Below, piece after piece: positions 19,052-61,954 of a stretch of 63,859 nucleotides of DNA. Position 1 is the stretch's first letter. Each line of letters starts with the position of its first letter. This DNA is from Callorhinchus milii (taxonomy: Eukaryota). Location of the stretch: positions 124,142 through 188,000 of the forward strand of contig NW_024704805.1 in the NCBI RefSeq assembly GCF_018977255.1, given 5' to 3'. A program made the translations under genes and the position numbers. A model generated the notes under the pieces. It saw only the letters and a program-made list of their open reading frames with translations, did no database searches and was not told where the DNA came from.

Positions 19052-19180
19052 TGTAGCTGCAATCCACCAGCAGATGGCGCACTAAACAAACACATATAAC
19101 ATGAGCTGCAACTCACATAATACGTCACGCTCCTTTCTGTAACTACCTTTCCTTTGTAGCAGTAACAGGTGCTTCCTGTT
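19052..19180 (+). promoter_or_regulatory. Putative CTCF site (ccagcagatggcgc 19067-19080, upstream tgtagctgc) plus E-box/ETS element (caggtgcttcct 19166-19177); best of 12 copies
   Basis: Exact match to the CTCF core CCASYAGRKGGCRS here and at 44482. Related copies at 4336, 8116, 11809, 15520, 22600, 25990, 32091, 37188, 40913 and 50468 carry 1-3 mismatches; all are on the + strand. Confidence 0.6.
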
Positions 19181-19847: not shown

Positions 19848-19872
19848 NNNNNNNNNNNNNNNNNNNNNNNNN
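19848..19872. other. Assembly gap (25 N)
   Basis: Run of N at the point where copy 1 departs from copy 2. Confidence 0.99.
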
Positions 19873-35730: not shown

Positions 35731-38700
35731 CACACTGCTACAGGAAGGCAGATTCCCCGTACAAAAACTCAGCAGACAATAATATCTTGCTCTCACACAT
35801 TTAACATGTGCTTTAAAGAGACTGAAATATGCAATTAAAACAGAGAGATTGGTGTAGTTCTGTGTTTATAGCACTTGCCTCACAATCGACAGACGTGGGT
35901 TCAATTGCCAAGAGAACGGATCATGGTGCAACTTTCCTTATTCCACCTTCCCGTCTCTGTTTACCATCAGAAAGTAGGAAGCAGGTTGTCAATCGATTGG
36001 CGGATCGATTTTCCAGAGTTAATAATTCCTTCAGAATTATCGTGTGAATAGTAAATTGTTCACTTCATCCAATGGGACACCGATATTTCCAATTTGCTGC
36101 CGTGCTTGGCCCTCACAATACGCAGTCAATTCGTTTACTGTATATTGAAGGAAGCACTGAGTGGCGTCTCGAAGATGTGATATGGCGCTGTATCAAATGC
36201 AACTATTATTATTCTTGTTATTAACTGTAGTCATGTTATCATTCCAGTAATAATAAAAAAATGTCTTGCATTCTGCGGAGCGCTGCCACGTGCAATATTC
36301 TTACTATGCTGCATTAGTAAGTAAGAAAACATCAAAACAAACAATTTCCGTTTATATTGCTGACACAGAAACTATTTTCTCTATTTATAGAGAAACTGCT
36401 TCTTCTGGTGGTTTCCGGCATGCAGAATGAGGTTGCATCGGAGCCAGTCCAGATCGCAGAAAAAATTGTCAGAAAAAAATTACGAAAAATTATGGAAATC
36501 TGGAAAACTTCCACAAAGATTCTGCAGAGGTTGATTCCATTAATGTTTCCCAGACTGAGTTGGATACATTTATTTTAGCTCAGAATTTCAAGAAATACGG
36601 AGAAAAGGTTGCAATATGTGTTGAGAGATAAATCAGCCATGACGTAATGTAACGTTGGAACAGGCTCAAGGAGCTGATGGTCTGCTCCTATTACTATTTA
36701 GCGCTTTACACGTTGGGGAGCGTCTTGGTGAATCAAAGAAGAAAGAAACCAATTTGGGGAATTTACGTTAAAGAAGGATGAAGTTTAACTTTCATTTTAA
36801 GTTTATTGAGCACATTTGCCTCGGGACGTCCGCCTGACACGAACGGACTTACCTGAATGCCCCTCTGATGTTACTCTGTTTTAAAATGCTATATGTCAGC
36901 GAAGTGTTCAATCAAATAATCTAATCGATGAAGTAAAAAGTTAGTGAATTGAATTAAATTGGGGAAGCAAGTGTTTGCACAGAGACACGTCAAATTAAGG
37001 AAATGTGAATGACATTGAATGGTCGAATGCTCCAGGGAAGACCAGAAAATATGAGGAACGAGCGGGGAAATGAGACTAATGGATAAAATTTCAGTGGAGA
37101 AGACAGCACCAAGGAAAGGCAAGTCGGGACCATAGCAATTAAGCTACGAAACCTCTCCAATTGCAAACGTGCTGTAGCTACAATCAACCAGCAGATGGAG
37201 CACTAAACATGCACATGCAACATGAGCTGCAACTTGTATAAATTGTCACGCTCCTTTCGGTAAATAGTTTCCTTTGCAGCAGTAACAGGTGCTTCCTGTT
37301 GTGTTTGACACAGTTCACTCATACACACTATTGCTGCTTCAAATGTAATTTACAAATATTTGCTTAAAGTATTAACACAAGGCTTAGGTTGCACAGGAAA
37401 CAATTTCTGTCTCACATATTATATTTTGTTCCCTTTTCCCAAATAGCAGCCGTTGTTAAGTTGTATTCTCTACTGTATTGCAATTCTCTCTTGAAAGTTG
37501 TTATATTATCGGCTTCTGCCACCCTTTGAGGCAATGCATTATAGATCAGAACAACTCGCTGTGTGAAAAAAATAATTCTGGCCTCCTCAATGCTTATTCA
37601 GGCAACTTCATTAAACGTGAATATTAAGCTATTTAATACGTTATTACCATATAATTAAAAAATTCTTTGATATTTCATCCCGCAACTGAAACATTGAAAA
37701 GCCACCGAAGTGCTCACTGTGTAATACATGTTGCATTATGTTCTGATGTTCTGGGCTGACACTAGGGCAGGCCTGGCTGTCTGTATTGTCGGTGAAACTT
37801 GTCCTACCGAGGAGATATTAAAACGAGGTCGAGACGTCTTGCCTGAAGGGACTATAATGTTGCCATAGCACTGCTCGAGAAAGGACAAGGTTTCGACCAA
37901 TGTCTGGACAGACTTTCTTTCGCTAAAATTCGTCTCTCATTCATAGCTGTTTGTGGAACATTGTTGTACACAAATTGGATGCCAAGTTGACAAAAAAATC
38001 TGCCTCTGTTTTCGACATTAAAACCTGCGAGGAGGTTTGAGGCGATTCTACGAAATGACAAGACTGTGTTCGATAAAAGCATTTCTCAAACACGAATAAC
38101 CAACACAATTGTAAGGTCATGTCTTATTCTATATTGTAACAATATCGATAATAATAAGAAAGGTTGCATTTGCTATACTGCCATATTACGTCATTGAGAC
38201 GTCTCAAAGATCGTCACAGAATATACTGAAAAGTGGAGTACTATATTCTTTTATGCCAATTGTGTACAGCTGTGTCCCACAAAAAGTTGTGGGTTGAGTT
38301 GCCTTATTATGTGGCACTGTGTGTGTGGGAGAGTGTGGGGTGTGAGGTGGTGCGGGGGAGAGGGTGGTGATGGGGCGATAGATTGTATTGTGTAGGCCAA
38401 ACTTGGTAGCCAACTGTGTAAAACAGTGGCCCACACATTGTTGTGGATTGATTGACCTGATTTTGTGGCACTGTGTGTGTTTGTGTGGGGGAGGGGAGGA
38501 GGCGGGACGCTGTGTGGGCGGGGCGTTGTAAATTAACGGCAGTGATTGGGCGATTCGGCTCAGTTCGGGGGTGGGGCAGTGACTGAGTGACATAGCTCTG
38601 TGGGCGTGGCAGACGTTATGTGGGCGGGGCTCAGTGCGGGCGGAGCAGTGACTTAGTGACGTAGCACTGTGTGCGCGTCAGTGGCTGTGTAGGCGGGGCT

Positions 38701-39376
38701 CAGTGCGGTCGGGGCAGTGACAAAATGACGTAGCTCTGTGGGCGTGGTAGTGGCTGTGAGATTAAGTATATATGATAATGTATATCAATGTTTCAATGCG
38801 CTTCACAGAAAAAAAACTGTCAAGTATAGTGACTGTGCATTTTGAAGGCGAAACACGATACTTATACCCAGAAAGTAAACCAGCGATCGACTAACACCAA
38901 ATTCCTACTTACTGCGCTGTAAACAGTGTTGAGTGTGGAGTAAGGAAATTTGACCAACAGTTGACCATGTCAGGAATCGAACAGATATCTCTCGCTTGGG
39001 GCGACGGCATTAATCCGTGAGCTACAGTACTCGACTGATGGTACATATATGTGAACTCATTTATGAGCGTTTGATGAACTAATATATGGGTGTATCTTGC
39101 TGCAGGTTTCAGACATGCGATTGAACAAAAACATATCAGTGATCGAAGAGCACCAATGGAGGAGCGATACGGCAGAGCAGAGAAAATGACGCAGAGACAC
39201 AAGGTTTGTACGTAACCCTCAGATCCTCTCCCTCGCAGTGTAGAGTAACTTCTCTAGGTTATTCCGTTCAGTAGTCCTCACCGTATCTTATTCTCTCCCA
39301 GCCAACATTCTCCAACTACACCATCAACGTTCTCTCAACGCCCTGTGACATTAAATACAGATGATACAAATCATAA

Positions 39377-40509
39377 ATGATAATGTATATCTATGTGGTA
39401 GCAGCCATCATTGCCTTATCAGATAAGCGCTAAGCTCATTCTACCAGTCTGGTTCCTGGACATATTATCTAATGCTTATGTTTTATTTATGGCATTTATG
39501 AAATTCTCTAATGCAGAAGGCTGTAGATGCTCAGTCCATGTACAAGTTTAAGACTGAGATTGATAGATTTCTAAAGGATAGAGGGTTTAAGGGATATGGG
39601 GATCAGGAGTGCAGATAGAGTTAGGTTAGAAGATCAGTCATGATATTATTGAATGGCTAGGCAGGCTGGAGGGTCCGAATGGCCTACTCCTGTTCCTGAT
39701 TTCTATGTTCGTATGTTCCTACGTTTATGGTATAAAATAACCAATACGCTACTTGCCTCATGGAGTCGTCCATCTCAGCGGACAAGGACTTGGTCTCGTC
39801 AGCGAGATGACCTGGTTTCAATTCCCGGGCGAGACAGGGGGTAAACCCTATGCAAGTTTCCTTACACCACAAACACACACTCTGTTTGCCCAGAAGTCAG
39901 TAGATGCACGTTTGTTAATCGATTGTTGGAATATATTTCGTTTGTAAATAATCCTTCAAAAAAATGTATACTTATATTAACATTAAAAATGCTGTCAATC
40001 GTTCCATCACTGTTTGTGGGTGAATGTTGTGCGCAATTAACTGCCACGTATCGCCCACAAACTACAAAGCAAAACTGTGCTATGTGAACCATTTGCAGAC
40101 ACCGCAACCATGTGGTTAGGGGCTATATCAAATCCAATAATCAGTTATATTTTTATTATTATTGCTGTTAATCGCTGACGTGTTTCTCTTTCCCACGACA
40201 TAGTGGAGGAGATTCTGTGACACAGCTGCAATCTGCTGTTACAGTGAATGAAGGGGAGGTTGTTTACCTGCAGTGTAATTACACAGCTGCAAGCACCAGC
40301 GATCCCTATCTGTTCTGGTACCGTCACTATCCCAATAAAGCTCCAGAATATATCCTAAGAACAGACACCAGCAACAAGTTCCCGGACCACGCGGACTTTG
40401 CAAAAGGACGTTTCTCAAAGAATGTGTCTAAAGGGGAGAGAACCGTCCCATTAAATATATCGCAAGTGAGAGTTGCAGACTCTGCGGGGTATTACTGTAC
40501 ACTGAGCCC
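39377..40509 (+). CDS. V segment Y5 (leader 39377-39422, V exon 40197-40509): open frames, intron with AT...AC termini
   Basis: MIMYIYVVAAIIALS-G-HSGGDSVTQ...YLQC...LFWYRH...DSAGYYCTLSP is continuous if 39423-40196 is spliced out; RSS cacagag 40510-40516, 23 bp, tcaagaact. Confidence 0.7.
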
Positions 40510-42134
40510 CACAGAGTTACAGATCAGCGATTCCGCCCTTCAAGAACTGCCTGTAGCTAAATGTTTATAGCACTCGCCTCGGAAGCAACCAAGCAAGCAA
40601 GATACGTGGGTTCAATTCACGGCAAAGTGTTTTGTGGCGTTTCGAAGATCTGATTTTGCACTGTATTAAATGCAACGATACTTATTATTAAGTCCGATCA
40701 TGTAATTTTCACATAAATAACTTCATATATTTTGCATTCTGCGGAGAACTGCACATGGAAGTGTCTTCCTTTCCTATTTGAAAAAGTAATAAAAAATAAG
40801 AAACTGTAACTTGAATTTACGTCGTGAAATTCATAACGGGAAAGTTATGACGGGCCGAAAACTTTTTGCTATCAACTGTCTCCAAATGCACACATGCTGT
40901 AGCTCCAATCCACCAGCAGATGTCGCACTAAAAAATATTATAACATGAGCTGCGACTGACATAACATGTCACGTTCCTTTCTGTAACTAACTTCCTTGGC
41001 AGCAATAACAGGTGTTTCCTGTTACAAATGACATACTTTCCTGACATACACCGTTGCTGCTTCAGTTGACGTGTAAAAACCGTGTCTGAAAGATGATTGG
41101 CACAAAATTTAGATGTCTCAAGAAACATTATTTGTGTCAGTTTTTACATGTGTTGACATTCTCCAAAATAAGTAGCCGCCTTTATGTGGATCTCACTGAG
41201 GTAATAAATGTGATAAATTTTGTTAAGTGAAATATGGTCATTTATTTCGGTTTAATTTGCAAGCGAGAATACAACTGACATAGTTTCAGTTAATGTAACA
41301 ATTGAAGCGTTATCTCCGATATAATGTGAGCTCAAACTGCCTATCTGGGTCCAGAACCAACAACATTCGGACTTATAAAAGAAAGTACCATTAACAAAGG
41401 CAGATTTTCAGCTCAGCCTTGATGATGGAAAGTAAACCTTTTTTTATAGCTGGGCTGCATGGTGCAAAATCCTTTAAATGAATGCATTCAGAACAGTAAC
41501 GAAAATAATAATGAGTCTTACGGTTGATATAGCGCAATATCGCGTGAAGGAGGCGTCTGGAAGCGCTTCACAAATGTACAGTAAAACAAATTGTTAGTGG
41601 TTGAAACGCACAACTCGTATCCTATCCCAGACCCATTGGCTTCCAATCCTCGACAGATCAAGTTCAAGATCCTCATAGGATAAAGTAGCATCAAAAGAGG
41701 AAGGTTGTCAACTCACCGATGATGACAGTCACTATTGCTATATTCCTTCAGGCTCTGCTGCATGGCTCAACGGTCCAAATGAATGAATTCAGTATAAAAA
41801 TAACATTTAAAATTAAATGAATATTTTCATTTGACATAGTGCCTGATCGCGTCTTGACGACATTTCAAAGCGCTTCACACAACACACTGTAAAGAAAATT
41901 GTTAGTGGGTGAAACGTGCGTCAATATTCCCATCCTAGACCAGACCCATTGGCTCCCTATCCCCGACAGATCAAGTTCAAGAACCTCTGTTTAGTGGGAA
42001 ACGCCTACAATCGGAGACAGTAAACCACTGAACCCGTCAGATCAGCGGCTTCCTCACAACTCGTCACTGAAGCAGCGACACAGCGATATAGAAAGGAAGA
42101 GATCCCATTATCTGTCCACACCTCAGCAGCCAAC

Positions 42135-43017
42135 ATGACAGCTCTCTGCCAGTTACTGATAGCAATCCTCACCATAGCCAGTAAGTGTGCGTGGACATGC
42201 CCAGCGCATGATTTGTACACTATATAATATCAGATGCTTAATGTTTAGAGCAATCGCCTCGGAAACGACAGGACCTGTGTTCGATTCTCGGGCAGTCGAC
42301 ACTTTCAGCAAGTTTCACGCTTCGGTTTTAAATGGGAACCGAGGTTAATAACCCATTAAAAAAACAGTTAACAATAATCTGATCATTCAATCTATGGTTG
42401 TTGTTGATGTTGTTGGACAATGCTGTGCTGACTTAGCTGTTCAGTTTCATCTAAAAAATATAGTCAATTCGGTTTACAATAGTAATAATAATCACTGCAT
42501 TTGATATAGCGCTTTTCACGTTGGGAGGACGTCGCAAAGCGCTTCACAGAACACACTGTAAAGTGAACTGACTGTATATGTGTTTTCTCTTGGCTCTTTG
42601 AGCCTCTAAACTTTGTGAAAAGGCGCTATATAAAAAGGAATAATTACTATACTTATGATGAATTGAAATTACCACTGAGCGTTGCTCAGCCTAATGTGTT
42701 AGTTTTGCTGTTCTTGCAGAAGTCCGTGGACAAGATGTTGTATCCCAATTTCCTCCCGAGATAACAGATATTGAAGGAAAAGACGTGACACTAAAATGTA
42801 ATATTTCAACATTGAACACTGCCTTCTGGTACAAGCAATATCCCGATGAAAACCTTCATTACTTGTTCAGGATATATACCTCTGGAAAAGTAGACAAATC
42901 TCCTGATCTACCGGAACGTTTCACAGGCGAGCTGATCAAGGAGAATAAAGTAATTAAGATGCAGATATTCGGTGCTGTTATTGGTGACAGCGCTGTGTAT
43001 CACTGTGCCCTAAACCC
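42135..43017 (+). CDS. V segment X5 (leader 42135-42180, V exon 42720-43017), apparently functional
   Basis: MTALCQLLIAILTIA; GQDVVSQFPP...LKCNISTLNTAFWYKQ...DSAVYHCALNP; RSS cacactg 43018-43024, 23 bp, acaaaaact 43048-43056. Confidence 0.9.
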
Positions 43018-46016
43018 CACACTGCTACAGGAAGGCAGATTCCCCGTACAAAAACTCAGAAGGCAATATTATCATGCTCTCACACATTTAACATGTGCTT
43101 TAAACAGACTGAAGTACATATGAAATTAAAGCAGGCAGATTTGTGTAGCTCTGTGTTTATAGCACTTCCCTCACAATCGACGGGCGTGGGTTCAATTGCC
43201 AAGAGAGCGGATCATGGTGCAACGTTCCTTATTCCACCTTCCCGTCTCTGTTTACCATCAGAACGTAGGAAGCAGGTTGTCAATCGATTGGCGGATCGAT
43301 TTTCCAGAGTTAGCAATTCCTTCAGAATTATCGTGTTGATAGTAAATTGTTCACTTCATCCAATGGGACACCGATATTTACAATTTGCTGCCATGCTTGG
43401 CCCTCACAATACGCAGTCAATTCGTTTACTGTATATTGAATGAAGCACTGAGTGGCGTCTCGAAGATGTGATATGGCGCTGTATCAAATGCGACTATTAT
43501 TATTATTGTTATTAACTGTAGTCATGTTATCATCAAAGTGGTAATTAAAAATGTCTTGCTTTCTGGGGAGCGCTGCCACATGTATGCTTCTTTCTATGCT
43601 GCATTAGTAAGTAAGTAAACATCAAAGCAAACAATTTCCGTTTAAATTGCTTAAACAAAAATTATCTGAAGAGAAACTGTTTCTTCTGGTGGTTGGGGGA
43701 ATGCAGAATAAGGGTGCATTAGAGCCAGTCCAGTTAGCAAAGAAATTGGCAGGAAAAAATTACGAAAAATTTAAGGAAATCTGGAAAACTTCTACAAAGA
43801 TTCTGGAAATGTTGGTTCTATTCACATTTTCCAGACTGAGTTGGATACATTTATTTTAGCTCAGAATATCAAGGGTTACGAAGAAAAGGTTAGAATATGT
43901 GTTGAGAGATAAATCAGCCATGATGTGATATAACGTTGGAACAAACTCAAGGACCTGATGGTCTGCTCCTATTCCTAGTTAGCGCTTTCCACGTATGGGA
44001 GCGTTCTTGGCGAGTCACTAAAGAAACGAAACATTTTAGTGTATTGAAGTTAAAGAACAATGAACATTAAATTTCATTTAAAATCTAGTGAGCACATTTG
44101 CATTGCGAAGTCCTCCTGACGTGAACCGACTTGAATAAATATCAATATGTTGTCACTCTGGTGCAAAATACTCCAAGTCAGCTAACTGTGCAGTCAAATG
44201 ATATAATCGATGAAATAATAAGACAAGGAATTCAATAGAAATGGAGGAGCAAGTGGCGCAGCACGTGTTAGCACAGAGACACGTCAATGTAAAAGAATGT
44301 GAATGACACCGAATATCCGAAGGTTCCAGAGAGGAAGATAAAATATGGGGAACGAGCAGGGAATCTAGACTAATGCATAAACTTCCTATGGAGAAGATAG
44401 CACCAAGGAAAGGTAAGACGGGCCCAAAATAATTATGCTATGAAACCTCTCCAATTATGTACGTATTGTAGCTGCAATCCACCAGCAGATGGCGCACTAA
44501 ACAAACACATATAACATGAGCTGCAACTTACATAACACGCCACGCTCCTTTCTGTAACTACCTTTCCTTTGTAGCAGTAACAGGTGCTTCCTGTTGCAGT
44601 TGACATATCTCACTCATACACACTATTGCTGCTTCAACAGGAATTTACAAATATTTGCCTGAAGTATTAACATACCTCGGTTGCTCATGAAACAATTTCT
44701 ATCTCACCTATTTTATATTATTGCCTTTATTCTCGATTAGCAGCCGCTCTTAAATTGTTTTCTCCGCGGTATAGCAATTCTCTGTTGACATTTGTTACAG
44801 TATCGGCTTCTGCCACCCTTTCCGGCAATGCACTTAAGATCAGAACAACTGGCAGTGTGAAAAAAAAATCTGCTCCTCACAGTTTGTTCAGGCAACTACA
44901 TTAAACGTGAACATTAAGCTATTCAATACGTTTATTACAACATAATTTAAAAAGATCATTGATATGTCATCCCGCAACTGAAACATTCAAAAGCGACCAA
45001 ACTGCTCACTGTGAAATACAGATTGGATTATGTTCTGCTGTTCTGGTCTGACACTCTAGAGCAGGCCTGGCTGTCAGTATTGTTGGTGAAGCTTGTCCTA
45101 CCGAGGAGATATTAAACCCAGGTCCAGGCGGCTTGCATGAAGGGACTATAGTGATGCCATTGCAATGCCCGAGAAAGTTTTCAACGGTATCTGGACAGAC
45201 TTTCCATAGGTTAAATTCATCCTTCATTCATAGCTGTTTGTAGGAAAGTGATGCATACAAATTGTTTGAGGAGATTTGAGGCGTATCGACTAAATGACAA
45301 GGCTGTATTTGATAAAAGCATTTCTGAAACCCGAATACTAAAAACATTAGTAAGGGCATATCTTATTCAACATTGTAATCATAACGATAATAAAAGCAAA
45401 AGTTGCATTTGATATACTGCAATATTACGTCATTGAGACGTCTCAGATCTCTTCACAGAATGCGCTGAAAAGTGTAGTGACTATATTTTTTGCTGCCAAT
45501 TGTGTACAGCAGTGTCCCACAAAAAGCTGTGGTTTGAGTAGCCAGATTTTTCGGCGCTGTGCGATTGGGAGAGTATGGAAGGTGGGGTGGCGTGGGTGGT
45601 TTAGGGTTAGGTTAGGTGTGGCGTTAGAATGTCTTGTGTGGGCCAAACATTGTAGCCAACTGTGTAAAACAGCAGCCCACAAATTTCATGGATTGAGTGA
45701 CCTGATTGTGTGGCACTGTGTGTTTCTGTGGGGGGAGTGGATGGGGCGTGGAGCTCAAATGCAACGGAAGTGATTGGGCGATGCGGCTCAGTGCGGGCGG
45801 GGCAGTGACTGAGTGACGCAGCTCTGTGGGCGTGGCAGCGTCTGTGTGGGCGGGGCTCTCTGTGGGCGGGGCAGTGGCTGAGTGACGTAGCTCTGTGGGC
45901 GTGGTAGTGGTTTTGTGGGCGGGGCTCTGTGTGGGCGGGGCTGTAACAGTGTGACTACTGAGCCAAAAAGCCCCATCAATCCACATTGGGGAGTTAATGT
46001 CAGACACGGGATCAGT

Positions 46017-46803: not shown

Positions 46804-48335
46804 CACTCTGCTGCCAAGCTATGGCGGCTGCGTACAAAAACTCCAACTGGTTGCTTTGCTGCTAATCCGCGAGGGGGCGTCGTTGCATCGAAGAAAAATA
46901 AAATAGCATTAGTACCTGTTTATTTGTGGAGAAATACTCTCAAGCAGTTAGGAGACACGTGGGGAAATATTGGTTGATTGTCTACGATGCAAATAACGCT
47001 TAAAACATGATCAATGAAATAGCTTAAGGTGAAACATATCGAGAGTCATTTAGTGTATAGTTTTTGTGCATTGGCTTCAAAAGCGAGAAGAACTGGTGTC
47101 GATTCCCGGGCGGGTCGAAACTTTGGGCAATTTTTTTNGATCCCCACACGTGGCTCTCTATACGGAGCAGAAGTAGGAATATGGTTGTTAGTCGATTGAG
47201 TTATGGCTTTTCCTGGAGAAATAACCCCTTAAAACATAATAATGGCAACAATTTTGTCACTCAAACCATAAATGTTTCTATGCAGCAGACGACCACATTA
47301 TGCCCCCCAAAGCACAGTCATTACACTGTACAATATATACTACAAAGCGCTTGGAGACGTCTCAATAGCATGATAACGCGCTGTATCAAATGTAATCGTT
47401 AATTTGGGCCCAGTTTAAATAATGTATTGCGGTATATGACAACTGGGGGTCGCTCGTGCGCCGATATTTTGACAAGATATCTGTGGCTGAAAAGCATGAA
47501 AAATGCTTCAAAAAAGCATATCCTGGAATCACTTCCAATCGTTCTCAGAAGCTTGACAACCTCGTCCCGTTCCTTGGTTTACACTTCCCATTTTGAATAA
47601 CAGATATACTCGAAACGTGTGTTTGCTACACAATCTTGGGAACATATTGATCTCATTCCCTTCGTCACCAGTTTTCCGATTCACCATTCCTTCAAGTCGC
47701 CGACATATTAGCCTTTGCCAAGGACATCTGGGTCCAATATCTCAGTGTTCAGAGCACTCGCCTCGCAAGCAGGAGATATGATTTCGATTTTCGCTTCTCG
47801 ACTGTGCGAAATGTTCGGTAGGTTTCCTTACTCCACTCCTCTACTTACCTCTTAGATTAGTAGGAAAACGTCCAGTAGTCGATTTGCGGATCGCTTCCAT
47901 ATTTCTTTAAAAAANTTCCTAGTAAATTGGTTATTCAATCCACGACTCTTTGTGCGATACTGTTGTTCCCAATGGGCTGCCGCACTTCTCTCTAATATAC
48001 ACAGGCAATTCTTTTTACAGTATATTTTGTGAAACATTGAGACGTATCCGTGATGCGCTATATCAAATGCAAGGATTATTATTATTTCATTCGGCTGAAC
48101 AAAAATATATCAGTGATGGAAGAAAACCAATGGAGATAGCAGAGCAGATGAGATGACGCACAATGAAAGGACACAAAGTTTTGGACATAACCCTTAGGCC
48201 TTCTCCATCACCGTTTTTGGCAATTTCTGTATGTCAGTTCCTGTGCAGCTCTCCTCACGGTAACTTACTGACTCCCAGCCAGCATTCTCAAGCGACAGCA
48301 TCAACTCTCTGAACACCCCGTGTCATTAAATACAT

Positions 48336-49078
48336 ATGACAATGTACATCTATGTGGCAGTCGCCATTATTACTTGTCAGGTAAGCGATAAAGTCATTCT
48401 GTATGTCTGCTTCCTGCAGATATTTTCCAACGCGATTGTTTTATTGTCTTTAATAATCAAAATGCTAAAGGAATCGTGGTGCCGTGGAGTCCTGTAGCTC
48501 AGTTGTTATGGCACTACGGTTGTATTTAAATTTGCGAAAGAATTCTCCAGGTATAATAATTTATTTATAATTGAATCACTCAAGCCACGACTGTTTGTGA
48601 ATTACTCCATGAATGCCTGTGGCATTTCGCCCAGAAAATACACTTAAATTGTGTTCTGTGACGACATTTGAGATATTTCAAAGGCATTATAAGTCGCTGT
48701 ATCAAATTCAACCATTATTAATATTATCATAATTATTGCATTGAACTCTGCTGTTTGTATGGTTTCTAGGACATTGTGGAGGAGACGCTGTGACACAGCT
48801 TCAATCTACTGTGAAAGTGAATGAAGGGGAGGATGTTTATCTGTAGTGCAATTATACAGCTACAACAACCAGCGACCCCGACCTGTACTGGTACCGTCAC
48901 TATCCGAACAAAGCTCTAGAATATATCCTTTGGACAGACAAAGGGAACAATCCGCAAAATGCAGACTTTGCAAAAGATCGTTTTATAACGCATGTGGATG
49001 AAGCGGAGAGAACCGTCCCATTAAATATATCCCAAGTGAGAGTTGCAGACTCCGCGGTGTGTTACTGTGCACTGAGCC
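48336..49078 (+). pseudogene. V pseudogene Y6 (leader 48336-48380, V exon 48770-49078), copy of Y4
   Basis: Same 45-nt leader and TAG (48844-48846) as Y4; RSS cacagag 49079-49085, 23 bp, acaaagact. Confidence 0.88.
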
Positions 49079-52050
49079 CACAGAGGCACAGATCAGCGAT
49101 TCCGCCCTACAAAGACTGCTTAACGGATTCCTGTGACTGAGTGGTTAGAGAACTCGCCTCGCAAATGAAAGCATCTGGGTTCGATTTCCGGCAGAGAGAA
49201 ACGTTGGGCCGGTTTCCTTATTCCAGGAACTCCTATTATTTTCATCGAAACCACTTGAAAGATCTTGCTTTCTCGGTAGAGGGGCCCCATGCACGTGAAC
49301 TTTTCTTGTGTTTCTTAAATACGTAGAAAAACATCCAAAATAACAGGTTGCAATTATATTGTTTTCAGAGAAACTGTTTCCTCCATTTACAGAAAAACAG
49401 TTTCTTCTGGTGGGTGGGGAATCCAGAAAAACTGGGTATCACTTTAAAATTAGAGTCAGTCAAGTAAGGAGAGCAATTGTGGAGCATTTGCACTAACCCA
49501 AACGGTAATGGAAATCCAGAACATTTTCACCAAAAAATATGTGGATGCTGGATCCATTCTTATTTTCTATGCTTAAGTGGATGGAGATCTGTTAGCTCAG
49601 GGATGCGGGCGAGGGCTGGAAATTGCAGTTGAGGTATAGATTAGCAATGATGGAATATAATTTGGGAAAAGGCTCACGTGTCTGAATGGCTTCCTCCTTC
49701 TCCTCTAAAGTGCCTTTGAAGGGGTGTGTCTTTCACTGAGTTTAACAATGTTGGGGCTTGGCCAAGAAACAGGGACAACGGCTGTTGACAGGAGGCACAA
49801 TAATAAAGAAACTTATTTAGGTTAGTGTGGCCAAGCTGGAGGGATTCAGACATAGACTGGCACAGCTTCAGGGCCCAGTGCTTTTGACAGTGGAAAACAA
49901 CATGAATCATTCCCAGACTGCGCGTAATAAATGCTGTCATATTTCTGTGGTATAGAAACACACAGAGATTCAATGCACTGTATTCTCTGTCCAAAACATG
50001 AAACTGAGAATGTTCCCCTTGCGCTGTTTGGATTACAGATCAATTCAGTTCAGGTTTTGCTGTCATATCAGGTTCAAGGAATGCCTAGAAGCAAAGCACA
50101 CACTAACAAGTATGTGTACTGTTCGGTGAGTCACTAACGATATAACACAAATTGTACTATTTACGTTAACGAATAGTAGTCAAGATGAAATGATATTTTA
50201 TATCTAGTGAACAGAGCGCAATGGCATAATCTCCTGAAGTGAACGGAGGAACATAAGAGTAAAGATATAGTGGCTATTTTGTAAAATGCTCCATCACAGC
50301 TCAATGCTCAGTCAAATAATATTTACGACAATATGAGGAACGAGCTGGCAAATGAGAATACGTTATAAACTTGTAATGGAGGAGATAGCTCCAGGAAAGT
50401 TAAGACAAGCCCAAAATAATTTACTATCAAAAGTCTCCAATTTTACCAGTGCTGTAGGTGCAATACACCAGCAGAAGGCGCACAATACACACTTATATCA
50501 TGAGCTGAAACTGATAAACTTGACACATAACTTTCTGTAACTAACTTCCTTCGTAGCAATAACAGATGTTTCCTGTTACAGTTGACATTCTTCACTCATA
50601 TACACTTTTGCTGCTTCAAGTGAAATTGACAAAGATTTTTTCTGAAGCACAGCATTAGTTTGCTCAAGAAGCAACTTAAATTTTATGTTTTGTACATTAA
50701 TGTCTTTCTCCCAGGAAAGCAGCCGCCCTGAATAAGATCTCACTTCTGTAATACATGGGTTAGATTTTGTTAACGGCAATATGGTCATTTGTTTTGGTTT
50801 AAGTAGGGTAGGAAATTAAAGCTGACCTTGCTTAGAAGTGCACAACGATGATAATATTAATAAAAATCATGATAATAATAATAATAGTAATGATAAAATT
50901 ATAATAATAATAATGCTGGCCTTTGGTACAGCGCCTTTCAATTTTCAGTCGTCAGCAAAGCTTAGTATCCGTTTTCTAATGAGAAGTGACGTTAGATTGT
51001 AGGCCAACACCAGAAGCAATTATCATGCAGTAGTTTCCCCACAAACGTTAATAAAGTGATTGATGGCTTCTATCTGGGGTTGTTGACAACAAAACCGTCA
51101 CAAAGGTTTGAGTTGAAATTCAGTCTAGTCTGTGAGCTCAAATTGTCGACATGGGGCCTGAAGCAACAACATTGTGACTCATATATGAAAGTATAACCAA
51201 CAGAAGCAGGTTTTAAGCTCAGCCTTGATAATAGAAAGGAAATTTTATTCCTTCAGACGATGCTGCATCGGTCCATGATTCTGCATATAAATCCTTGTGT
51301 TCACCGCGTCCAGGCTAGATTATGTCAACTGTCTGCTCACAGTATAACATGCCTCTTCCCTTCACACATTGCTAGATATCCAGCAATCTGTATGCTGTGC
51401 TTTTCACACACACGATTCCACAGTCTACACTACCAGCCAATAACAACTGGCTCCCAATCTCGGGAATGTGAAGCTCAATAACAACCGTAATATTCCATTT
51501 GAGTAGTCTTTCACGTCGGAAGGAAGACCTAGGCCGCTGAACATTCAAAGATTTTGACCTGAGGTTCGGTGGGGATCGTGGAGTTTTGAGTGCAGGTGGT
51601 GTAGCGGGTGATCCAAAGCATGGTCAACGAGTAGGGTCTTGAAGTGGGCTTTTAAGGCGGCAAGGAAGGGGGCGAGGCGGTGGGACAGCGGAATGGATTT
51701 GCAGATTTCGTGGTTAGAGTTGCAGTTCAAGATATTTACCCTAACCATTAAATATCTCAATGGTATTGTCCCATCACACTTTTTGATATCCTGGAAACTT
51801 GCAAATCTGCTCCACATTTTGCTGACAAGACTGTCACCAAATTGAATTGCCTCGAAGGAGACTGACTCTCCCCCTAGCCCCAGAGACAAACTGTGAACAT
51901 TACCTGCCGTCCCACATTGACCAGATGATGTCCACGTCATTTGATTAGGAAGTGAGTTCACAGCGATCAGTTGTCATCTGAAACAGAGTTGTGCATCGCA
52001 GATCAACAACAATATCTTACCAACAAAAGAGCGCAGCTGTGGAGTGAGTG

Positions 52051-53704: not shown

Positions 53705-54690
53705 ATGAGGCTGTTTGCTGTCTGTCTGGTGCTGGGAACCTTTATTCCAGGTGAGACCGTGTTGAGCTAATTCAGTTTTGGTGATGATGGTGAGCATTTC
53801 TTCAGCATCAATTTGTGAACGGTAACCTGTAGTTCAGTGTTGAGAGCTCTCGCCTCGCAAACGAGAGGACCTGGATTGGATTCCCGGGCATGATGAATAG
53901 TTAAGCAGGTTTGTTTTACTCCATAAGCACACACACGCCTCTGTTTACCCAGCTGTAAATTGGAGTCCCAATGCTCCGTAACTCGATGTAATATTCCTTC
54001 TAAATATTAATTCAATTGAAACGTTTTTAGTGGTGTATCTGATCTATTTCCATGGAAAATAATCCGTTTTTAAAAATAATTGTTTGGCAGTGTATTCCAG
54101 GAATGTTATTTTAGGCAATGCTGTGTTAAATTGGATGTCCTTTTTAGCGCACAAAAATACACAGCATAACTCGAGAATAAATTCCGTGAAAAGCATCCAG
54201 ACCTCTCAAGAAAGTGATAATGCTTTTTATAAAATCCTTTGATTACTATTAACTCATGTTTAACAAAGGACGTACGCATAGCGCATTTCTCGACGGGAGG
54301 ATTTTCAAATGCGCTCAAAATGTAATTGAGGCAACGAGTGAATAATATAATTTTGTGCTCTTCCATCTTTATTGCAGACCTCTGTGATGGTAATTCCGTC
54401 AGTCAGAAAGCTGTCACGATGGTTAAGAAAGAAGGAGAAATTGTGATTTTGCAATGTACTTATTCCACGACTGGAAGCTACTACTATCTCTATTGGTTCC
54501 GACATTACTCAGACAAACAGCCGGAGTTTATAATTTGGAAATATTCTGGGAGTGACAATCAAGATAAAGGAATAGGATTTGGAAACCGTTTCACTGCTCA
54601 CCTGCAGAAATCCAACTCATTCATCAGTTTATCCATCTCTGAGCTGGTGGTATCTGACAGCGCTGTGTATTACTGCGCCTTTATTCTCAC
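53705..54690 (+). CDS. TCR delta/alpha V segment (leader 53705-53750, V exon 54378-54690), apparently functional
   Basis: MRLFAVCLVLGTFIP-D-LCDGNSVSQK...ILQCTYSTTGSYYYLYWFRH...DSAVYYCAFILT; RSS cacagtg 54691-54697, 23 bp, acaaaaact 54721-54729. Confidence 0.92.
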
Positions 54691-56815: not shown

Positions 56816-57561
56816 CAGATAATCCGACTTATTCATTATTAAAAATAATCTTTGTATTTAAGTAAGTACATTACCATATCGTAAGTGGTGATACACCTCT
56901 TCACATAATATGCTGAGAATTGATCATCATATTAGCTGCCTTCCCTTCCTCCTACATAGCCCCCTGCATCTCTTCATCTGTTTGTCACCCCTTCTATTCC
57001 CACGGTTTATATAACCACCGCACCCCATACTCATTACCACAATTTCTCCATCCTCATCCACCCATCATTACCCATATCTCGGTAACGGACTGCTGCCTTG
57101 ACCGGCTTCCCCGTCCCGCTGCTGATCACTGTAACAGAATTCACGCCAACTCAAAGGTGTGTAAGCAGTTTCTTTATGTGACTTTCCCAAGTGCCAGTAA
57201 AATCCTCTCTACATCACACAACCTTTGTCCTACTCACTGTGTCAGATTATACTCCGTCTCGTTGGCTTCTCCGTCAATTGTCCATTTAAACCTAAATGAG
57301 ACTGGAACCGTCATTCACAAAGCCCCTCTCTGCCCACTGCTCTCGGGCACAGTTAGTCAGTCCCTTTTAAAATGTATGTTCTTCCCCTCCACCCCTAAAT
57401 TACCCACCTTCCACCCCTCAAAGCCGCTGACACCAGCCATGATGTGACGCGCTGTTCAATACAAATAAACCAAGTCTCCAATTCTCTTACAGAACAGCCC
57501 ATTGTTACTCACATTCACTCTGAGGTGTCCGAGGCTGACGGTATCTCCCAGCGGTGAGAGG

Positions 57562-58286
57562 ATGTCTCTCCTCTGTGTCTCCATCTCCTTCCTCTTCTTA
57601 CACTGTAAGTGTTTGTTTCCATAACGCAACACGACACAGCGCCAGTGAACGTCATCGTAATAATGTGCAATATAATAATTATAATAATAATCCTTGCATT
57701 GATATTTTGCTTTATCACTTCGACGAGACGCTTTAAAGTGCTTCTCGTAATACATTGTGAAGTTAAATGACTGTTATTTTTGGGAGGAAATGCGAGAGGG
57801 AATTGCTATCAATTACATAATGATAATTATATTATATATTAAAATTATTTGTATGAATTGGTATTATAATTATATTGTATTTCGTGATTATACTATGTTA
57901 ATGGATATCAGTCAAAATCAAGCCAGCGCTAGCGATATAATTTCCATAGCATTGGTGATTGTTGAAGACCTGATAAACTTATGTTATATTGTGTGTAATT
58001 TACAGATGTTTTCAGTGCCTCAGTAAAGCAAACGCCATCCGCTCTTAGGAGACAAGAATGCGATTCTTTGACCATCAACTGTATCTTTGAAGCAGAGTCT
58101 TATGAAACTTTCAGTAAGATGGAATTTTACAGAAAATCTCGAAACGAGAGAGATTGGAAGCGGATTCCTCTTGAAGCACGCTTTGTTGTGAAAACAGACA
58201 AGGAATCGTTGTCTTATTCTCTGGAAATTAATGATTTGTAAGTTCAAGACAGCGCTGACTACAAATGTACAGCTCGTTACAGGTAC
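57562..58286 (+). pseudogene. NTCRV: NAR-TCR V segment (IgNAR/VNAR-like; leader 57562-57604, V exon 58006-58286) with one in-frame stop
   Basis: MSLLCVSISFLFLH-Y-VFSASVKQTPSALRRQECDSLTINC...FYRK...RFVVKTDKESLSYSLEINDL*VQDSADYKCTARYR. This matches the VNAR pattern (VDQTP...GESLTINC...YRK...SFSLRINDL.VEDS..Y.C) with its short HV2 region and an extra FR1 Cys. TAA at 58239-58241. RSS cacaatg 58287-58293, 22 bp, acaagaagc 58316-58324. Not detected by the supplied ORF track. Confidence 0.88.
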
Positions 58287-58640
58287 CACAATGGTTTATC
58301 AGGACTTCACATAATACAAGAAGCCCCTGCACCACGTCGAAGTAAAAACACAGAGAATTTGAACTTGTCAATGAATTCAATGAACATTCTTCATTTGTAT
58401 GTAGTGTACAATGATATTTAATCTTTAACGAACGACCAATATTTATGCATATTTCGGAAGGAATATCGGTATGAATGCACAGTGGAAATCTGCTGGGATT
58501 AGCATAACTAATAATTTACTCCACGAGACAGACGGCATGTCAAGGCAAACGAAGACAATTTTCAAAAGTTTGTTAAACTTTATGTCATTGATTGACCATT
58601 TGTGAACGGAGAGAACATTTCAGCTGTTTTTGAAACCATT

Positions 58641-58712
58641 GGTTTTTGTACTTACAACCAATACTGTGTTGGGGTTCGAATGATCACATTGGGAATTATC
58701 AGCACAAATACT
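58641..58712 (+). other. NTCRD: NAR-TCR D segment (coding 58669-58684, ttggggttcgaatgat) flanked by two 12-bp-spacer RSS
   Basis: ggtttttgt 58641-58649, 12 bp, tactgtg 58662-58668; D; cacattg 58685-58691, 12 bp, acaaatact 58704-58712. Confidence 0.88.
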
Positions 58713-58851
58713 GTGCAACTTTTTTTTCTCAATACGACGGTCTATATTACCGATGACGGTTTCCTATTTAATGCTGCTGAATGTGTCTAAATATTGCTTT
58801 CAAAATTTATTATTTCATGAGGACATTTTCTGGAATTATTTGCAGAGAGGT

Positions 58852-58930
58852 GTTCTTTGTGCCGTGCACTTTGTCTGTGTTTGGGTGGAAATAATATTGT
58901 TAATAAACATGATTTGGACAAACGAAAATT
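58852..58930 (+). other. Candidate second NAR-TCR D segment (degenerate 12-D-22)
   Basis: gttctttgt 58852-58860, 12 bp, gtctgtg 58873-58879; G-rich core tttgggtggaaat; 3' heptamer degenerate (aatattg), 22 bp, acgaaaatt 58922-58930. Confidence 0.45.
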
Positions 58931-59028
58931 ATGATGATGGGACCACTGTTGAAGAGATAAGAAATATTGAGCAATTTGTCAGGATTGGGTTGTATTAGTG
59001 ACAGAATTTCACAGTGATCTGACATAAC

Positions 59029-59114
59029 AGTTTTTGCACCTTATAGAATGAGAGCTGTGTGACTGTGGTATTATAATGAAGATGGATCAGGAACCAAAGT
59101 TACTGTAACGAAAA
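59029..59114 (+). other. NTCRJ: NAR-TCR J segment (coding 59068-59114, YYNEDGSGTKVTVTK) with 5' 23-RSS and phase-1 donor
   Basis: agtttttgc 59029-59037, 23 bp, gactgtg 59061-59067; IgNAR-type DGxGT motif rather than TCR FGxG; donor gtaagt at 59115. Confidence 0.9.
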
Positions 59115-60581
59115 GTAAGTGAGTCAAAATTCTATCGAAATTAAATGAAGCTTCATTCCAATGAATTTGCGAAATGCACTGTTTGACTAATTGATACCAA
59201 TTATTTACAACTGTGCCATTTGAACAAATCCACCCCACCAATTATCATGACGAATTTTTTGTGATGTGCAAAAGGGAAACTGACTCCGCTGTGAGGCTTG
59301 TTAGAGGAATTGGCACACTTTTTTCACCTTGTTCTGTACTGTAATTGATTTTTGCAAACGAACAAGTCCAGGGAATTTGTATGTAAAATCACGTAACCAA
59401 TTTATGCAATAGTGGTTGGATCAAAATATGTATTACTATCCCTACCTTATTCTATTCTCCCAAGATGTGGGGCCTCGTTCGAACTGAACTGGCACCAGTG
59501 TGAAATATTCTACAACTTGCTGCCTTCCATCAACCTCCATTTCTGACTTAAGTTTATCGAACTGAAATGTTAATTTCAGAGAGAGAGAGAAAGCCCTTTA
59601 CTTCTGCTTCAAGTGAAACTGCATTGAGCAGCTCACAGACTGGGAGAGAAACTGATATTGGCAACAAACCAGAGACATAACCGCCTCCAGCAGCGGTGTT
59701 AAAGTAACGGCATTTACAGCAGTGAAAGTTTCCATTTCCCTCAATTGTAAACCCAGTGAGTTAACGGTACAAACTGACACCTGATTCTCTGCTAAACATT
59801 CCCATGATCACAGACAGCCAAAGCCTCAATGTGGATAATCAGCTTCAGCAAACCAGTATAAGGTTCGACAAACAAAGCTTAATTAGACGTGCGTTTATGA
59901 GAGATCATCTCAATTGTGTCACAGAAATAGTCACACTATTTGCACCAAAATCTGGGTCATCTACAAGAGCTCTGTATAATTAATCCCTTCCAAATTTCTT
60001 TCTATCACATTTACAACAGTAATCCTGACATTTGTTGAAAAGCATTTCACGTACAAATTACGAATGATGTCAAGGCCTTCGAAAGGGAACTTAGGTTTTT
60101 TTACTCTGGTGATTCCAGTGAAGAGAGGCTGCATTTATGTGAAGAGACTGCTGTTCGGCAGTGTTCTCCGTAGAGCAGCTAGGATGAGGGGAGATTTAAA
60201 TAATTTTTCAAAACTGTTAAAGATTTTGATAGGGTAGATCAGGAGAACTTGATTCCAACGTCCAGTGCATCAGTTTCCAGAGAAAACAAGTTTAAAATAA
60301 TTGTTAAAAAAAAGAGAGGGAAGATGAGAAAAACTGTGTGCACGGGCAAAGATTTTACAAACTGCAATTTACTCCATGAAACTGTGATGCAAGCAGATTG
60401 TATGATAAACTTCAAAGGGAAATGGAAGAAATAAGTTGCAACGCGACGGGGTGAGATAATGGGATCGGGAATAGATGGACTGCTCTTTCATAGAGAACTT
60501 AAAGGCAATGTGGGACGAGTAGTCTCTTTTTGTGCTATACGATTCTATGATTCTAAGTAACTTAAAAATAAAACCCCACAG

Positions 60582-60882
60582 GATCAAGTAATGCAATTTG
60601 CAAGATACAGCGCCAAGTGTCGGCTTCTGCTGGTGAGACCGTTTCATTGCATTGCAAATATATATTATTCATTGAAGAAAATTTCATCATCTACCGGTAC
60701 CGTCAGTTCTCTGGTGAGGCAATGAAATACCTGCTCCAAAAAAATCCTCAGTAGAGGGAGTGAACCCCACCGGAGAACGTATTTCTGCTTCTCTTGACAC
60801 TGCCAAGAAAATCAGCGTTTTAAAAATCGCTGGCCTGCGGCTGACAGACTCCGCTATGTATCACTGCGCACTCAGTCTGCAC
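60582..60882 (+). pseudogene. STCRDV: Leaderless supporting TCR delta V of the NAR-TCR cassette, frameshifted as assembled
   Basis: Phase-1 acceptor cag 60579-60581, in frame with the J donor: SSNAICKIQRQVSASAGETVSLHC...IYRYRQF...YLLQK, then -1 nt in an A7 run (about 60737-60743), ...GERISASLDTAKKISVLKI...DSAMYHCALSL. W41 codon is CGG. RSS cacagtg 60883-60889, 23 bp, acaataacc 60913-60921. No leader exon seen in 59115-60581. Confidence 0.8.
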
Positions 60883-61954
60883 CACAGTGACACACATCAT
60901 AGGAAACCTCGTACAATAACCCTTATCACAACCAAAGATGGAAAACAACAAAGTACAGTTAGTGACAGACGGTAAAATAAGCCCTCTCCCAACTGGAGCC
61001 GTAGCTTACACCTGATCGAGTTTATATCAAGTCAATTAAAGTATATTATATTTATACTGAACGCTAGAAACTCTGGAACCCCCATCAATCTTTTCACAAT
61101 GCATTTCCCACAATCCCATCCCCAGCTCCTAAACTATTTTTTAAATCCAGCCTCAAAGACGTTCTTTGATGTTCACCCCTTGATTTTGGAATGGCTTTCG
61201 CCAAAATTCAACAGATTTTTTTAACTGTTTGATCGATATTTGACGGTTTTTGATTGCACTAAAAGCTCACTTATAGGAACTATGTGCACCAAACAATTCT
61301 TTTGTTGTTTCTACCATTAAGCATTTAGCTTCGGTTTAAGGTGTTTCACAGCAGGAAACGTCCCAAAGCACTACACATGAAACAGTATAGAGTAAGTTAA
61401 CTTTGTGATTAGAAGGAGAAAGACAATTTGGACAGAGTACGTTCCTACAAACATAAATGAAGTGAATGACCAATCTATAAAAAATATATAATAGAGCCTG
61501 TATGGAGCAAGGATTCATCCGCAGCATTTCGACATGCCAGGAATGGAACCCACGTCTCCCGTTTGCAAGTGATTTTCCAGTAATAAAGCACCAGGACTCC
61601 ACATTTAGATACGCTACCAGCATTGCATGAGAGCGTCACCTTACACATACAAGGCCCAGTTCCGTAAAAGGGTCCTCTGTACACGATCTTCTGACGCAGA
61701 GAAGTACCCATCACTGCTGTTTTGACTGTTGCTTCCACATCAGTTATCATGCCCAATTCAAGACACAAACTTTTATCTCCCAAGCTCCGTTCAAACCATT
61801 TAGATGCCCACTTGGATAGATGGAGCTGAAGCTGATCAATTCGTTATTGTTGGTCCTGATGTGTAAGACATTCTCCCTCACCATTAAAACTGTATGGGAA
61901 TTTACATCTGGCCTTTGTTTCTCATGAATAACGTGGTCTATCTGGCGATAGTTG

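Follow-up and report, generated by a model that had tools for sequence, protein, structure and literature searches.

Does the V array on contig NW_024704805.1 of Callorhinchus milii carry a germline cassette for the NAR-TCR, and if so, is that cassette intact and does it represent a receptor family of its own? The original prediction held that a complete cassette lies here, embedded in a TCR V array, and that it may belong to an undescribed NTCR family. We found every element that this prediction listed, where it had placed them: a leader, a V with a 22-spacer recombination signal (RSS), a D between two 12-RSSs, a DGSG-bearing J with a 23-RSS, and a supporting V with a 23-RSS (Table 1). "Complete", however, does not hold, as both V exons carry reading-frame lesions in the assembly. 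We conclude that the locus is probably a NAR-TCR cassette in germline form, one of several paralogues and non-functional, within the TCR alpha/delta V array of C. milii. Positions throughout are those of the window, that is, the whole 63,859-nt stretch of DNA that was analysed.

Table 1. Elements and lesions of the NAR-TCR cassette, with positions in the window.
Feature	Position	Strand	Description
Leader exon of NAR-type V	57562..57604	+	43 nt, hydrophobic; MSLLCVSISFLFLH plus 1 nt, phase 1
NAR-type V exon	58006..58286	+	FR1 to YKC TARYRY end
In-frame TAA stop, FR3 of NAR V	58239..58241	+	EINDL*VQDSADYKC
NAR V RSS	58287..58324	+	heptamer CACAATG, 22-nt spacer, nonamer ACAAGAAGC
D 5' RSS	58641..58668	+	nonamer GGTTTTTGT, 12-nt spacer, heptamer TACTGTG; 1 mismatch to consensus
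D core	58669..58684	+	16 nt, TTGGGGTTCGAATGAT
D 3' RSS	58685..58712	+	heptamer CACATTG, 12-nt spacer, nonamer ACAAATACT
J RSS	59029..59067	+	nonamer AGTTTTTGC, 23-nt spacer, heptamer GACTGTG
NAR-TCR J coding segment	59068..59114	+	YYNEDGSGTKVTVTK plus 1 nt, phase 1
J-to-supporting-V intron	59115..60581	+	1467 nt
Leaderless supporting delta-type V exon	60582..60882	+	two frames as assembled; acceptor ccccacag
Trp41 loss, supporting V	60695..60697	+	CGG (Arg); IIYRYRQ vs paralogue IIYWYRQ, Trp41 near-invariant
Supporting V frameshift	60738..60744	+	A7 run, reading frame shifts one base
Supporting V RSS	60883..60921	+	CACAGTG, 23-nt spacer, ACAATAACC; 1 mismatch

The N-terminal V and its private D and J

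The N-terminal V has a leader exon of its own, whose phase-1 donor reads ACT at the exon end and GTAAGT at the intron start (GT at 57605-57606). This leader is near-identical to those of the C. milii gene models P0003 (MSLLCVSISFLFLQ) and P0006, and its length is that of the NAR-TCR leader of Hemiscyllium. The absence of the WYRK Trp is a feature that defines NAR-TCR V domains in nurse shark and elephant shark, and an extra Cys in the a-b loop is a further published trait (PMC1845163); the window V has both: it reads MEFYRK, and its Cys (RRQEC-DSLTINC) aligns with the KEC/EEC of all homologues. Similarly, all 14 of the 14 other NAR-TCR Vs that we gathered lack this Trp, having F, L (P0016) or H (P0006) instead. 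Together with the leader and the leaderless delta V described below, these are the published hallmarks of the NAR-TCR (PMC1845163).

Sequence searches and phylogeny gave the same assignment. In the PDB, the NAR V matched only shark VNAR chains over its full length (30 chains, E from 5.6e-9); matches to TCR alpha were partial, with E above 0.04. Corresponding PDB searches that started from a conventional V or from P0038, a C. milii paralogue, matched Ig and TCR V domains by the thousand, with multi-V scFv chains ranked first; such matches do not discriminate between TCR and Ig. No Pfam family was matched by the 77-aa NAR V piece at E up to 1, as this V, truncated and divergent, escapes the V-set model; in place of Pfam we used the PDB search and an all-database HMMER search. 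Among 1.84 billion representatives searched, C. milii models came top, followed by elasmobranch two-V models, with Triakis IgNAR scoring lower than both. The NAR V is 86% identical to P0003 (XP_007909367), an annotated C. milii NAR-TCR V, and the differences are mostly conservative (73/77 positives). In our tree it is sister to P0003 (99/95*) inside the C. milii NAR-TCR V clade (91/91); NAR-type and conventional Vs are split by a branch with support of 100/99*, and the IgNAR Vs form a separate clade (97/91*). The N-terminal V is of NAR type, not TRAV/TRDV type.

The private D and J lie downstream of this V. Only two 12-spacer RSS matches occur in the 63.9 kb, one on either side of the 16-nt D core and facing one another, an arrangement that none of 60 shuffles produced. 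Matches to the 23-spacer RSS (at most 3 mismatches) numbered 22 in the window against 1.05 expected. The excess of RSSs and the facing pair are more than chance. In addition, the D 5' RSS is conserved in a C. milii paralogue whose model, P0001, translates straight across it. The RSSs of the V and its private D and J conform to the 12/23 rule, with spacers of 22/23 for the V, 12 on each side of the D and 23 for the J, as do those of the Hemiscyllium NAR-TCR locus, and this rule forbids a direct V-to-J join. We also considered a second D: an isolated 12-RSS-like site of the 5' type stands at 58852-58879, and a site with a 13-nt spacer lies near 59016. The partner RSS is absent for both, and we treat these sites as chance or remnant. 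The J ends in a donor at 59115 (AAA, then GTAAGT). Its motif, DGSGT.VTVT, joins both V domains in the shark models P0005, P0008, P0009, P0012, P0014 and P0020; the Mustelus model P0014 runs from a NAR V through DGSGTVVTVT and a supporting V to a TCR constant and transmembrane region.

A leaderless delta V within a TCR V array

The J donor and the acceptor of the next V agree in phase: the junction codon, A+GA, encodes Arg and is in frame, and the same VTVTK-R junction is found in P0006. This phase match had been predicted, as had the lack of a leader for the supporting V. A scan of 59117-60581 turned up no hydrophobic exon that starts with ATG, scores 1.8 or more and ends at a phase-1 GT donor, and the same scan recovers the leaders of intact conventional Vs. 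Downstream of the exon, the read-through translation of the RSS is identical to paralogue models (HHSDTHHRKPRTITLITTK).

The closest comparison for the supporting V is the intact C. milii paralogue P0038, to which its 5' piece is 72% and its 3' piece 94% identical. In the tree, the supporting V clusters with the delta Vs that accompany NAR-TCR (93/85), and its 5' half sits on a long branch, sister to all other supporting Vs. Since the 5' half is 46% and the 3' half 85% identical to the supporting V of P0003, we considered a mosaic origin; this was ruled out, as P0038 matches both halves.

A conserved CDR1 Cys has been reported for NAR-TCR-associated delta Vs (PMC1845163). This residue is thought to link the supporting V to the NAR V. 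It is absent from the supporting V of the window (CDR1, KYILFIEENFIIY) and also from intact P0038, from P0003 (W) and from P0035 (Y). The window copy and P0038 instead have a Cys in strand A. It is conceivable, if doubtful, that these two form a holocephalan NAR-TCR subfamily that gave up the CDR1 Cys and gained the strand-A Cys (AICK / AVCQ vs TVSQ elsewhere). In such a subfamily, both the disulfide between the domains and the way in which the two V domains stack would differ.

As predicted, the cassette is embedded in a TCR V array, whose neighbouring Vs carry 23-RSSs. Hits to the array were all from C. milii, with 92% for the best match to an intact V. About 8 or 9 of the window's 19 conventional Vs are pseudogenes, and some stops are common to duplicated copies, which indicates that they are real mutations. 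We found no further NAR-type V and no second copy of the cassette in the window.

The mechanism of the NAR-TCR is established (Criscitiello 2006, as summarised in PMC1845163, PMC3457774 and PMC5931798), and we infer its steps here from the anatomy of the locus. In a working cassette of this layout, RAG would join the NAR V (22/23-RSS) to the private D, which is flanked by 12-RSSs, and this D in turn to the private J (23-RSS), and the supporting V (23-RSS) would independently join downstream delta D/J segments. Transcription would start at the NAR leader, with splicing of leader to NAR VDJ and, from the phase-1 J donor, to supporting VDJ and then C delta. This would yield a delta chain whose delta V carries a free single-domain NAR V. 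These downstream steps are our reconstruction for a window that holds neither C delta nor TRD D/J segments. As the supporting V is leaderless, it would be expressible only via the NAR exon.

Lesions in both V exons and their explanation

Neither V exon is open as assembled. At the site of the FR3 stop in the NAR V, the paralogues have Q (P0003, P0002), K (P0006) or E (P0007), each one base from TAA; the TAA also creates a GTAAGT at 58238-58243. In the supporting V, the entry frame ends ...YLLQKNPQ* and the next frame continues KKSSVEGVNPTGERISASL...YHCALS. P0038 reads straight through at the A7 site (YLLQKKSSVEGGNPTGE, with QKKSS there), which fits one more A. The third lesion is the replacement of Trp41 by Arg. 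Together, the stop, the frameshift and the loss of Trp41 mean that no productive chain would come from this copy as assembled. The RSSs look usable, and the copy may still rearrange non-productively.

The window copy keeps all its RSSs and splice sites, both canonical Cys pairs and the a-b loop Cys. Its NAR V, stop aside, retains every hallmark residue and its RSS; inactivation, if real, would thus be recent, or possibly the property of an allele. Each of the two frame lesions involves a single base, and one of them falls within a homopolymer, where assembly errors classically occur.

Could the cassette be functional, with the stop and frameshift introduced during sequencing or assembly, or representing a null allele in the animal that was sequenced? 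We consider this unlikely. An A7 homopolymer is where the frame is lost, a single base separates each lesion from the paralogue state, and the retained signals, splice sites and Cys residues, like the conservative character of the changes relative to P0003, fit an intact gene. However, the TAA is a substitution and no homopolymer error, and Trp41-to-Arg is a third independent damaging change. Furthermore, the array is rich in pseudogenes, and the stops common to duplicates argue that the lesions in the assembly are genuine. A pseudogenised paralogue is more likely than an intact copy that was misassembled. Damage to both V exons also fits the dependence of the supporting V on the NAR exon, as a lesion in either V would lift selection on the other.

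We find it improbable that the cassette belongs to a new, divergent NTCR family, as the original prediction had suggested from its FYRK motif. The supporting V could be cited in favour of such a family, as it forms with P0038 a subgroup that has the strand-A Cys in place of the CDR1 Cys, and its 5' half has a deep position in the tree. FYRK is no departure, however, but the family norm, both in the published sequences (PMC1845163) and in those gathered here. For the NAR V, the tree contradicts a new family, as the closest relative is an annotated C. milii NAR-TCR V with 86% identity (XP_007909367), and the two pieces of the supporting V match an annotated C. milii protein at 72% and 94% identity.

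That the locus is a remnant of an IgNAR-type Ig cluster, or a trans-rearranging Ig V merely located in a TCR locus, is scarcely credible. In its favour are the NAR-type V and RSSs arranged as in an Ig heavy chain (V 23-type, D 12/12, J 23), but the J is followed by a phase-matched leaderless delta-type V where constant exons would stand, the V reads FYRK and groups with NAR-TCR Vs apart from IgNAR Vs (97/91*), the cassette has one D and not several, and C. milii is reported to lack IgNAR (PMC3964593).

From these results, we conclude that the cassette is probably a pseudogene copy of a known system, not a new receptor family. The NAR-TCR in elephant shark is already known. It is an oddity in that one chain carries two separate V(D)J rearrangements and adds to a T-cell receptor a single domain of antibody-like character; the fact that chimaeras have it while being without IgNAR underlies the view, published for elephant shark, that the single-domain V began in a TCR. 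The window copy adds locus-level detail only, namely the exact germline coordinates and RSSs of one cassette, evidence for a layout shared by a chimaera and a shark, and an example of paired decay in two interdependent V exons. These details are of use for locus annotation, and repertoire pipelines should mark this copy as a pseudogene.

Comparison with known systems

The nearest relatives are the other NAR-TCR copies of C. milii, with which the comparison was made at the protein level against automated, partly chimeric gene models. They share with the window copy the leader, the NAR V with its a-b loop Cys and without the WYRK Trp, a related J (DGS.TKVTVTK) with the same Arg junction codon (VTVTK-R-), and a leaderless supporting V with a conserved RSS and conserved sequence downstream. 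The window copy differs in its FR3 TAA, its supporting V frameshift and its Trp41-to-Arg change, and its supporting V, like that of P0038, has a Cys in strand A and none in CDR1.

Among elasmobranchs, whose NAR-TCR is known from the nurse shark (Criscitiello et al. 2006), the locus L001 of Hemiscyllium ocellatum (XP_060678048) has the same order of leader, V, D, J and supporting V. Its V RSS likewise has a 22-nt spacer (CACAGTG-22-TCAAAAACT), its J has a 23-RSS, and a clear 12-RSS lies 3' of its D; the D 5' RSS is weaker and less canonical, and with it the D core parses to 16 nt. The V-to-D and D-to-J distances are about 380-400 bp, the leader is 43 nt, the J donor is phase 1, and the J (YYYNIDGSGTVVTVTP) has the window's DGSGT.VTVT motif. 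The layout is thus conserved between chimaera and shark in its RSS types (V 22-RSS, 12-RSS-flanked D, J 23-RSS), spacings and phase-1 J donor. In contrast, the Hemiscyllium NAR V is only 41% identical to that of the window, the intron between J and supporting V is 2.45 kb as opposed to 1.47 kb, the supporting V has the CDR1 Cys (SGSCQY), and both V exons are open.

The VNAR of IgNAR belongs to the same single-domain V fold family and has the FR motifs SLTINC, GRF/YV and SFSL.I.DL in common with the window V. Unlike the window V, however, VNAR keeps the WYRK Trp, has G in place of the a-b loop Cys, is followed by Ig constant exons and falls in its own clade. Finally, TCR mu of marsupials and monotremes is also a three-domain chain in which an unpaired antibody-like N-terminal V stands on a supporting V, with two sets of segments (PMC3457774). 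That likeness is convergent, not homologous: TCR mu is mammalian, its N-terminal V is VH-derived, and the marsupial supporting V is germline-joined.

Anatomy and identity of the cassette

Reading 57200-61300 with motifs located exactly, we found every element listed by the original prediction, each at its predicted position. Matches to a 23-spacer RSS (at most 3 mismatches) numbered 22 in the window, versus 1.05 expected from shuffles, and most sit 3' of V-like reading frames on the + strand, indicating that the window is a V array. Only two 12-spacer matches occur in all 63.9 kb on both strands, and they flank the 16-nt D core in facing orientation; such a facing pair arose in 0 of 60 shuffles. 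The C. milii gene model P0001 reads through a paralogous D element with the same nonamers and heptamers and a different core. Between D and J lie two unpaired RSS-like sites, which may have been left by additional D elements or may match by chance.

Features of the cassette and of the surrounding V array (window positions)
Feature	Position	Strand	Details
Leader exon, NAR V	57562-57604	+	MSLLCVSISFLFLH plus one base; donor ACT/GTAAGT
Leader-to-V intron	57605-58005	+	401 nt
NAR V exon	58006-58286	+	acceptor tttacag/
NAR V RSS	58287-58324	+	CACAATG-22-ACAAGAAGC
D 5' RSS	58641-58668	+	GGTTTTTGT-12-TACTGTG
D core	58669-58684	+	16 nt
D 3' RSS	58685-58712	+	CACATTG-12-ACAAATACT
Unpaired RSS-like site	58852-58879		GTTCTTTGT-12-GTCTGTG
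Unpaired RSS-like site	58987-59016		GGTTGTATT-13-CACAGTG
J RSS	59029-59067	+	AGTTTTTGC-23-GACTGTG
J coding	59068-59114	+	YYNEDGSGTKVTVTK plus one base; donor GTAAGT at 59115
J-to-supporting-V intron	59115-60581	+	1467 nt
Supporting V exon	60582-60882	+	last J base + GA = Arg codon, leading into V frame
Supporting V RSS	60883-60921	+	CACAGTG-23-ACAATAACC
Conventional Vs with stops/frameshifts	RSS 15114, 17604, 24619, 28300, 30701, 35731, 46804, 49079
Conventional V without Cys23, counted with the damaged Vs	RSS 3690
Segmental duplication	8826-19847 vs 34205-45265		98.0% over 11 kb
Segmental duplication	28614-32457 vs 46992-50834		99.2% over 3.8 kb
Segmental duplication	13405-19846 vs 20475-26717		roughly 7-kb two-V unit, 92%

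Pfam did not recognise the 77-aa piece of the NAR V that precedes its stop codon. A PDB sequence search with the NAR V returned end-to-end alignments to 30 shark VNAR chains (E 5.6e-9 to 0.01); TCR alpha gave weak, partial matches only (E > 0.04). HMMER, run exhaustively against 1.84 billion representatives, yielded 20 matches, the best being C. milii XP_007909367 (P0003; 80% identity across both stretches that HMMER matched, 86% across a 77-aa alignment by BLASTP), followed by other C. milii models and then by two-V models from Cetorhinus, Heterodontus, Hemiscyllium, Scyliorhinus, Mustelus, Chiloscyllium and Rhincodon; the Triakis IgNAR ranked below these two-V elasmobranch models. In a maximum-likelihood tree, a 100/99* branch divided NAR-type Vs from conventional and supporting Vs, IgNAR Vs formed a separate clade (97/91*), and the window V was sister of the P0003 NAR-TCR V (99/95*) within a clade of C. 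milii NAR-TCR Vs (91/91). The V was thus placed among NAR-TCR Vs and not with TRAV/TRDV, the grouping named beforehand as evidence against the reading. The observation is real, and its NAR-TCR interpretation, supported by these results and by the layout shared with Hemiscyllium, is right.

The FYRK motif had been taken as a hint of an undescribed family. The published hallmarks of NAR-TCR Vs in nurse shark and elephant shark include a leader, an a-b loop Cys and loss of the WYRK Trp (Venkatesh et al. 2007, PMC1845163). The window V shows all three, with RRQEC supplying the a-b loop Cys and FYRK in place of WYRK. Trp was found at this position in 0 of the 14 other NAR-TCR Vs gathered, which carry F, L or H. 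Having FYRK is therefore usual within the family and does not point to a new one.

The supporting V was predicted to be leaderless, and a scan of 59117-60581 turned up nothing resembling a leader exon (ATG, hydrophobic core, phase-1 GT donor) for it; the same scan recovered the leaders of intact conventional window Vs. A dedicated leader was the second outcome named beforehand as evidence against the reading, and it too did not materialise. In the tree, the 5' half of the supporting V falls with NAR-TCR supporting Vs (93/85), and its closest relative is the intact C. milii paralogue A0A4W3H2Z9 (P0038; 72% identity for the 5' piece, 94% for the 3' piece). Delta Vs associated with NAR-TCR are reported to conserve a CDR1 Cys (PMC1845163), yet CDR1 of the window copy (60656-60694) and of P0038 lacks it. 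It is also absent from P0003 (W) and P0035 (Y), a further C. milii model, and so is not universal among C. milii copies. Both the window copy (AICK, its Cys at 60599-60601) and P0038 (AVCQ) have a strand A Cys at a position that is Ser in other C. milii copies. This combination, the sole mildly new observation, is a weak lead that departs from the published description. The acceptor of the supporting V (60556-60581) has a polypyrimidine tract that is weak and A-rich (40% pyrimidine at -23 to -4, versus 75-80% in conventional window Vs and 65% in the Hemiscyllium supporting V); paralogue models suggest a similar context, and the weak tract may be typical of the family.

Coding lesions and the V array

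The cassette had been called complete; its anatomy is, yet its coding sequence is broken as assembled. In the NAR V, an in-frame TAA lies in FR3 (58239-58241), so that leader plus V translates ...SLSYSLEINDL*VQDSADYKCTARYRY. This position is Q in paralogues P0003 and P0002, K in P0006 and E in P0007, each codon one base from TAA. The same TAA creates GTAAGT (58238-58243), which fits the 5' splice-site consensus perfectly but lies within the V exon; if used, it would be a phase 2 donor mismatched to the supporting V acceptor. The supporting V, in the J-donor frame, reads (R)SSNAICKIQRQVSASAGETVSLHCKYILFIEENFIIYRYRQFSGEAMKYLLQKNPQ*, and the remainder of the domain, KKSSVEGVNPTGERISASLDTAKKISVLKIAGLRLTDSAMYHCALS, follows in the next frame, the switch falling at an A7 run (60738-60744). 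In addition, the near-invariant Trp41 position is CGG (Arg; 60695-60697). P0038 reads ...IIYWYRQSSGEEMKYLLQKKSSVEGGNPTGERISASL... across these sites, showing that the window copy has a Trp-to-Arg change and one A missing from the homopolymer. The stop, the frameshift and the Trp41 change leave the cassette anatomically complete and not coding-intact.

Could these lesions be assembly errors, or one allele? One of them does lie in a homopolymer; since it is the only one of three independent damaging changes to do so, we consider this main alternative unlikely. Damage is also found among the roughly 19 conventional V segments with 23-RSSs, about 8 or 9 of which carry stops or frameshifts. The array consists of recent segmental duplications, and a YL*CNY stop common to the duplicated Vs ending at 30701 and 49079 must predate their duplication, indicating that at least part of the damage in this assembly reflects genuine mutation. 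We conclude that the cassette is quite probably a germline NAR-TCR cassette that has become a pseudogenised paralogue; neither its completeness nor its possible family novelty is supported.

The first 11-kb copy stops exactly at a 25-N gap (19848-19872), so the assembled copy number may be uncertain here. Database relatives of an intact V (54691) are all from C. milii; the best reaches 92% and none 100%, so the window comes from a holocephalan that is probably C. milii. Public automated gene models for the locus are chimeric: in P0035, intron-derived residues link a conventional V leader (MRLFAVCLV, matching the window leader at 53705-53750) to a supporting V, P0001 translates a D element and its RSSs as an exon, and P0003 strings several V exons together. 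NAR-TCR cassettes are poorly annotated in the C. milii genome.

Function and comparison with known NAR-TCR loci

How intact NAR-TCR copies work is established; the individual steps here are read from anatomy. In an intact copy, RAG would join V to D and D to J within the cassette under the 12/23 rule, and the supporting V would rearrange separately to a delta D/J. Splicing of leader, NAR VDJ, supporting VDJ and C delta would then give a three-domain chain whose N-terminal V would act as a single domain in binding antigen. In the window copy, the germline stop and frameshift, as assembled, preclude a productive chain, and its RSSs may still permit non-productive rearrangement. Lacking a leader, the supporting V would depend on the NAR exon, and a lesion in either V would relax selection on the other, which would fit the damage seen in both.

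The NAR-TCR system is already described in the elephant shark lineage: the C. milii genome is reported to have NAR-TCR and to lack IgNAR (PMC3964593), and NAR-TCR V exons of cartilaginous fish map within the TCR alpha/delta locus (PMC12227049). A Mustelus model (P0014) is an NAR-TCR chain, comprising leader, NAR V, DGSGTVVTVT, supporting V, and TCR constant and transmembrane regions. The genomic locus of Hemiscyllium ocellatum (L001) has a 43-nt leader; a V RSS of CACAGTG-22-TCAAAAACT; a D ~400 bp past V, whose 3' 12-RSS is clear and whose 5' RSS is weaker, the core parsing to 16 nt; a J ~380 bp past D, with a 23-RSS, that reads YYYNIDGSGTVVTVTP up to its phase-1 GTAAGT donor; and a supporting V with a 23-RSS 2.45 kb downstream. 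The window cassette matches this locus in order, spacer classes, spacings and phases, and both the 22-RSS and the Ig-type RSS logic of the original prediction recur there, indicating that the 22-RSS and the 23 / 12-12 / 23 logic are conserved in NAR-TCR cassettes from chimaera to shark.
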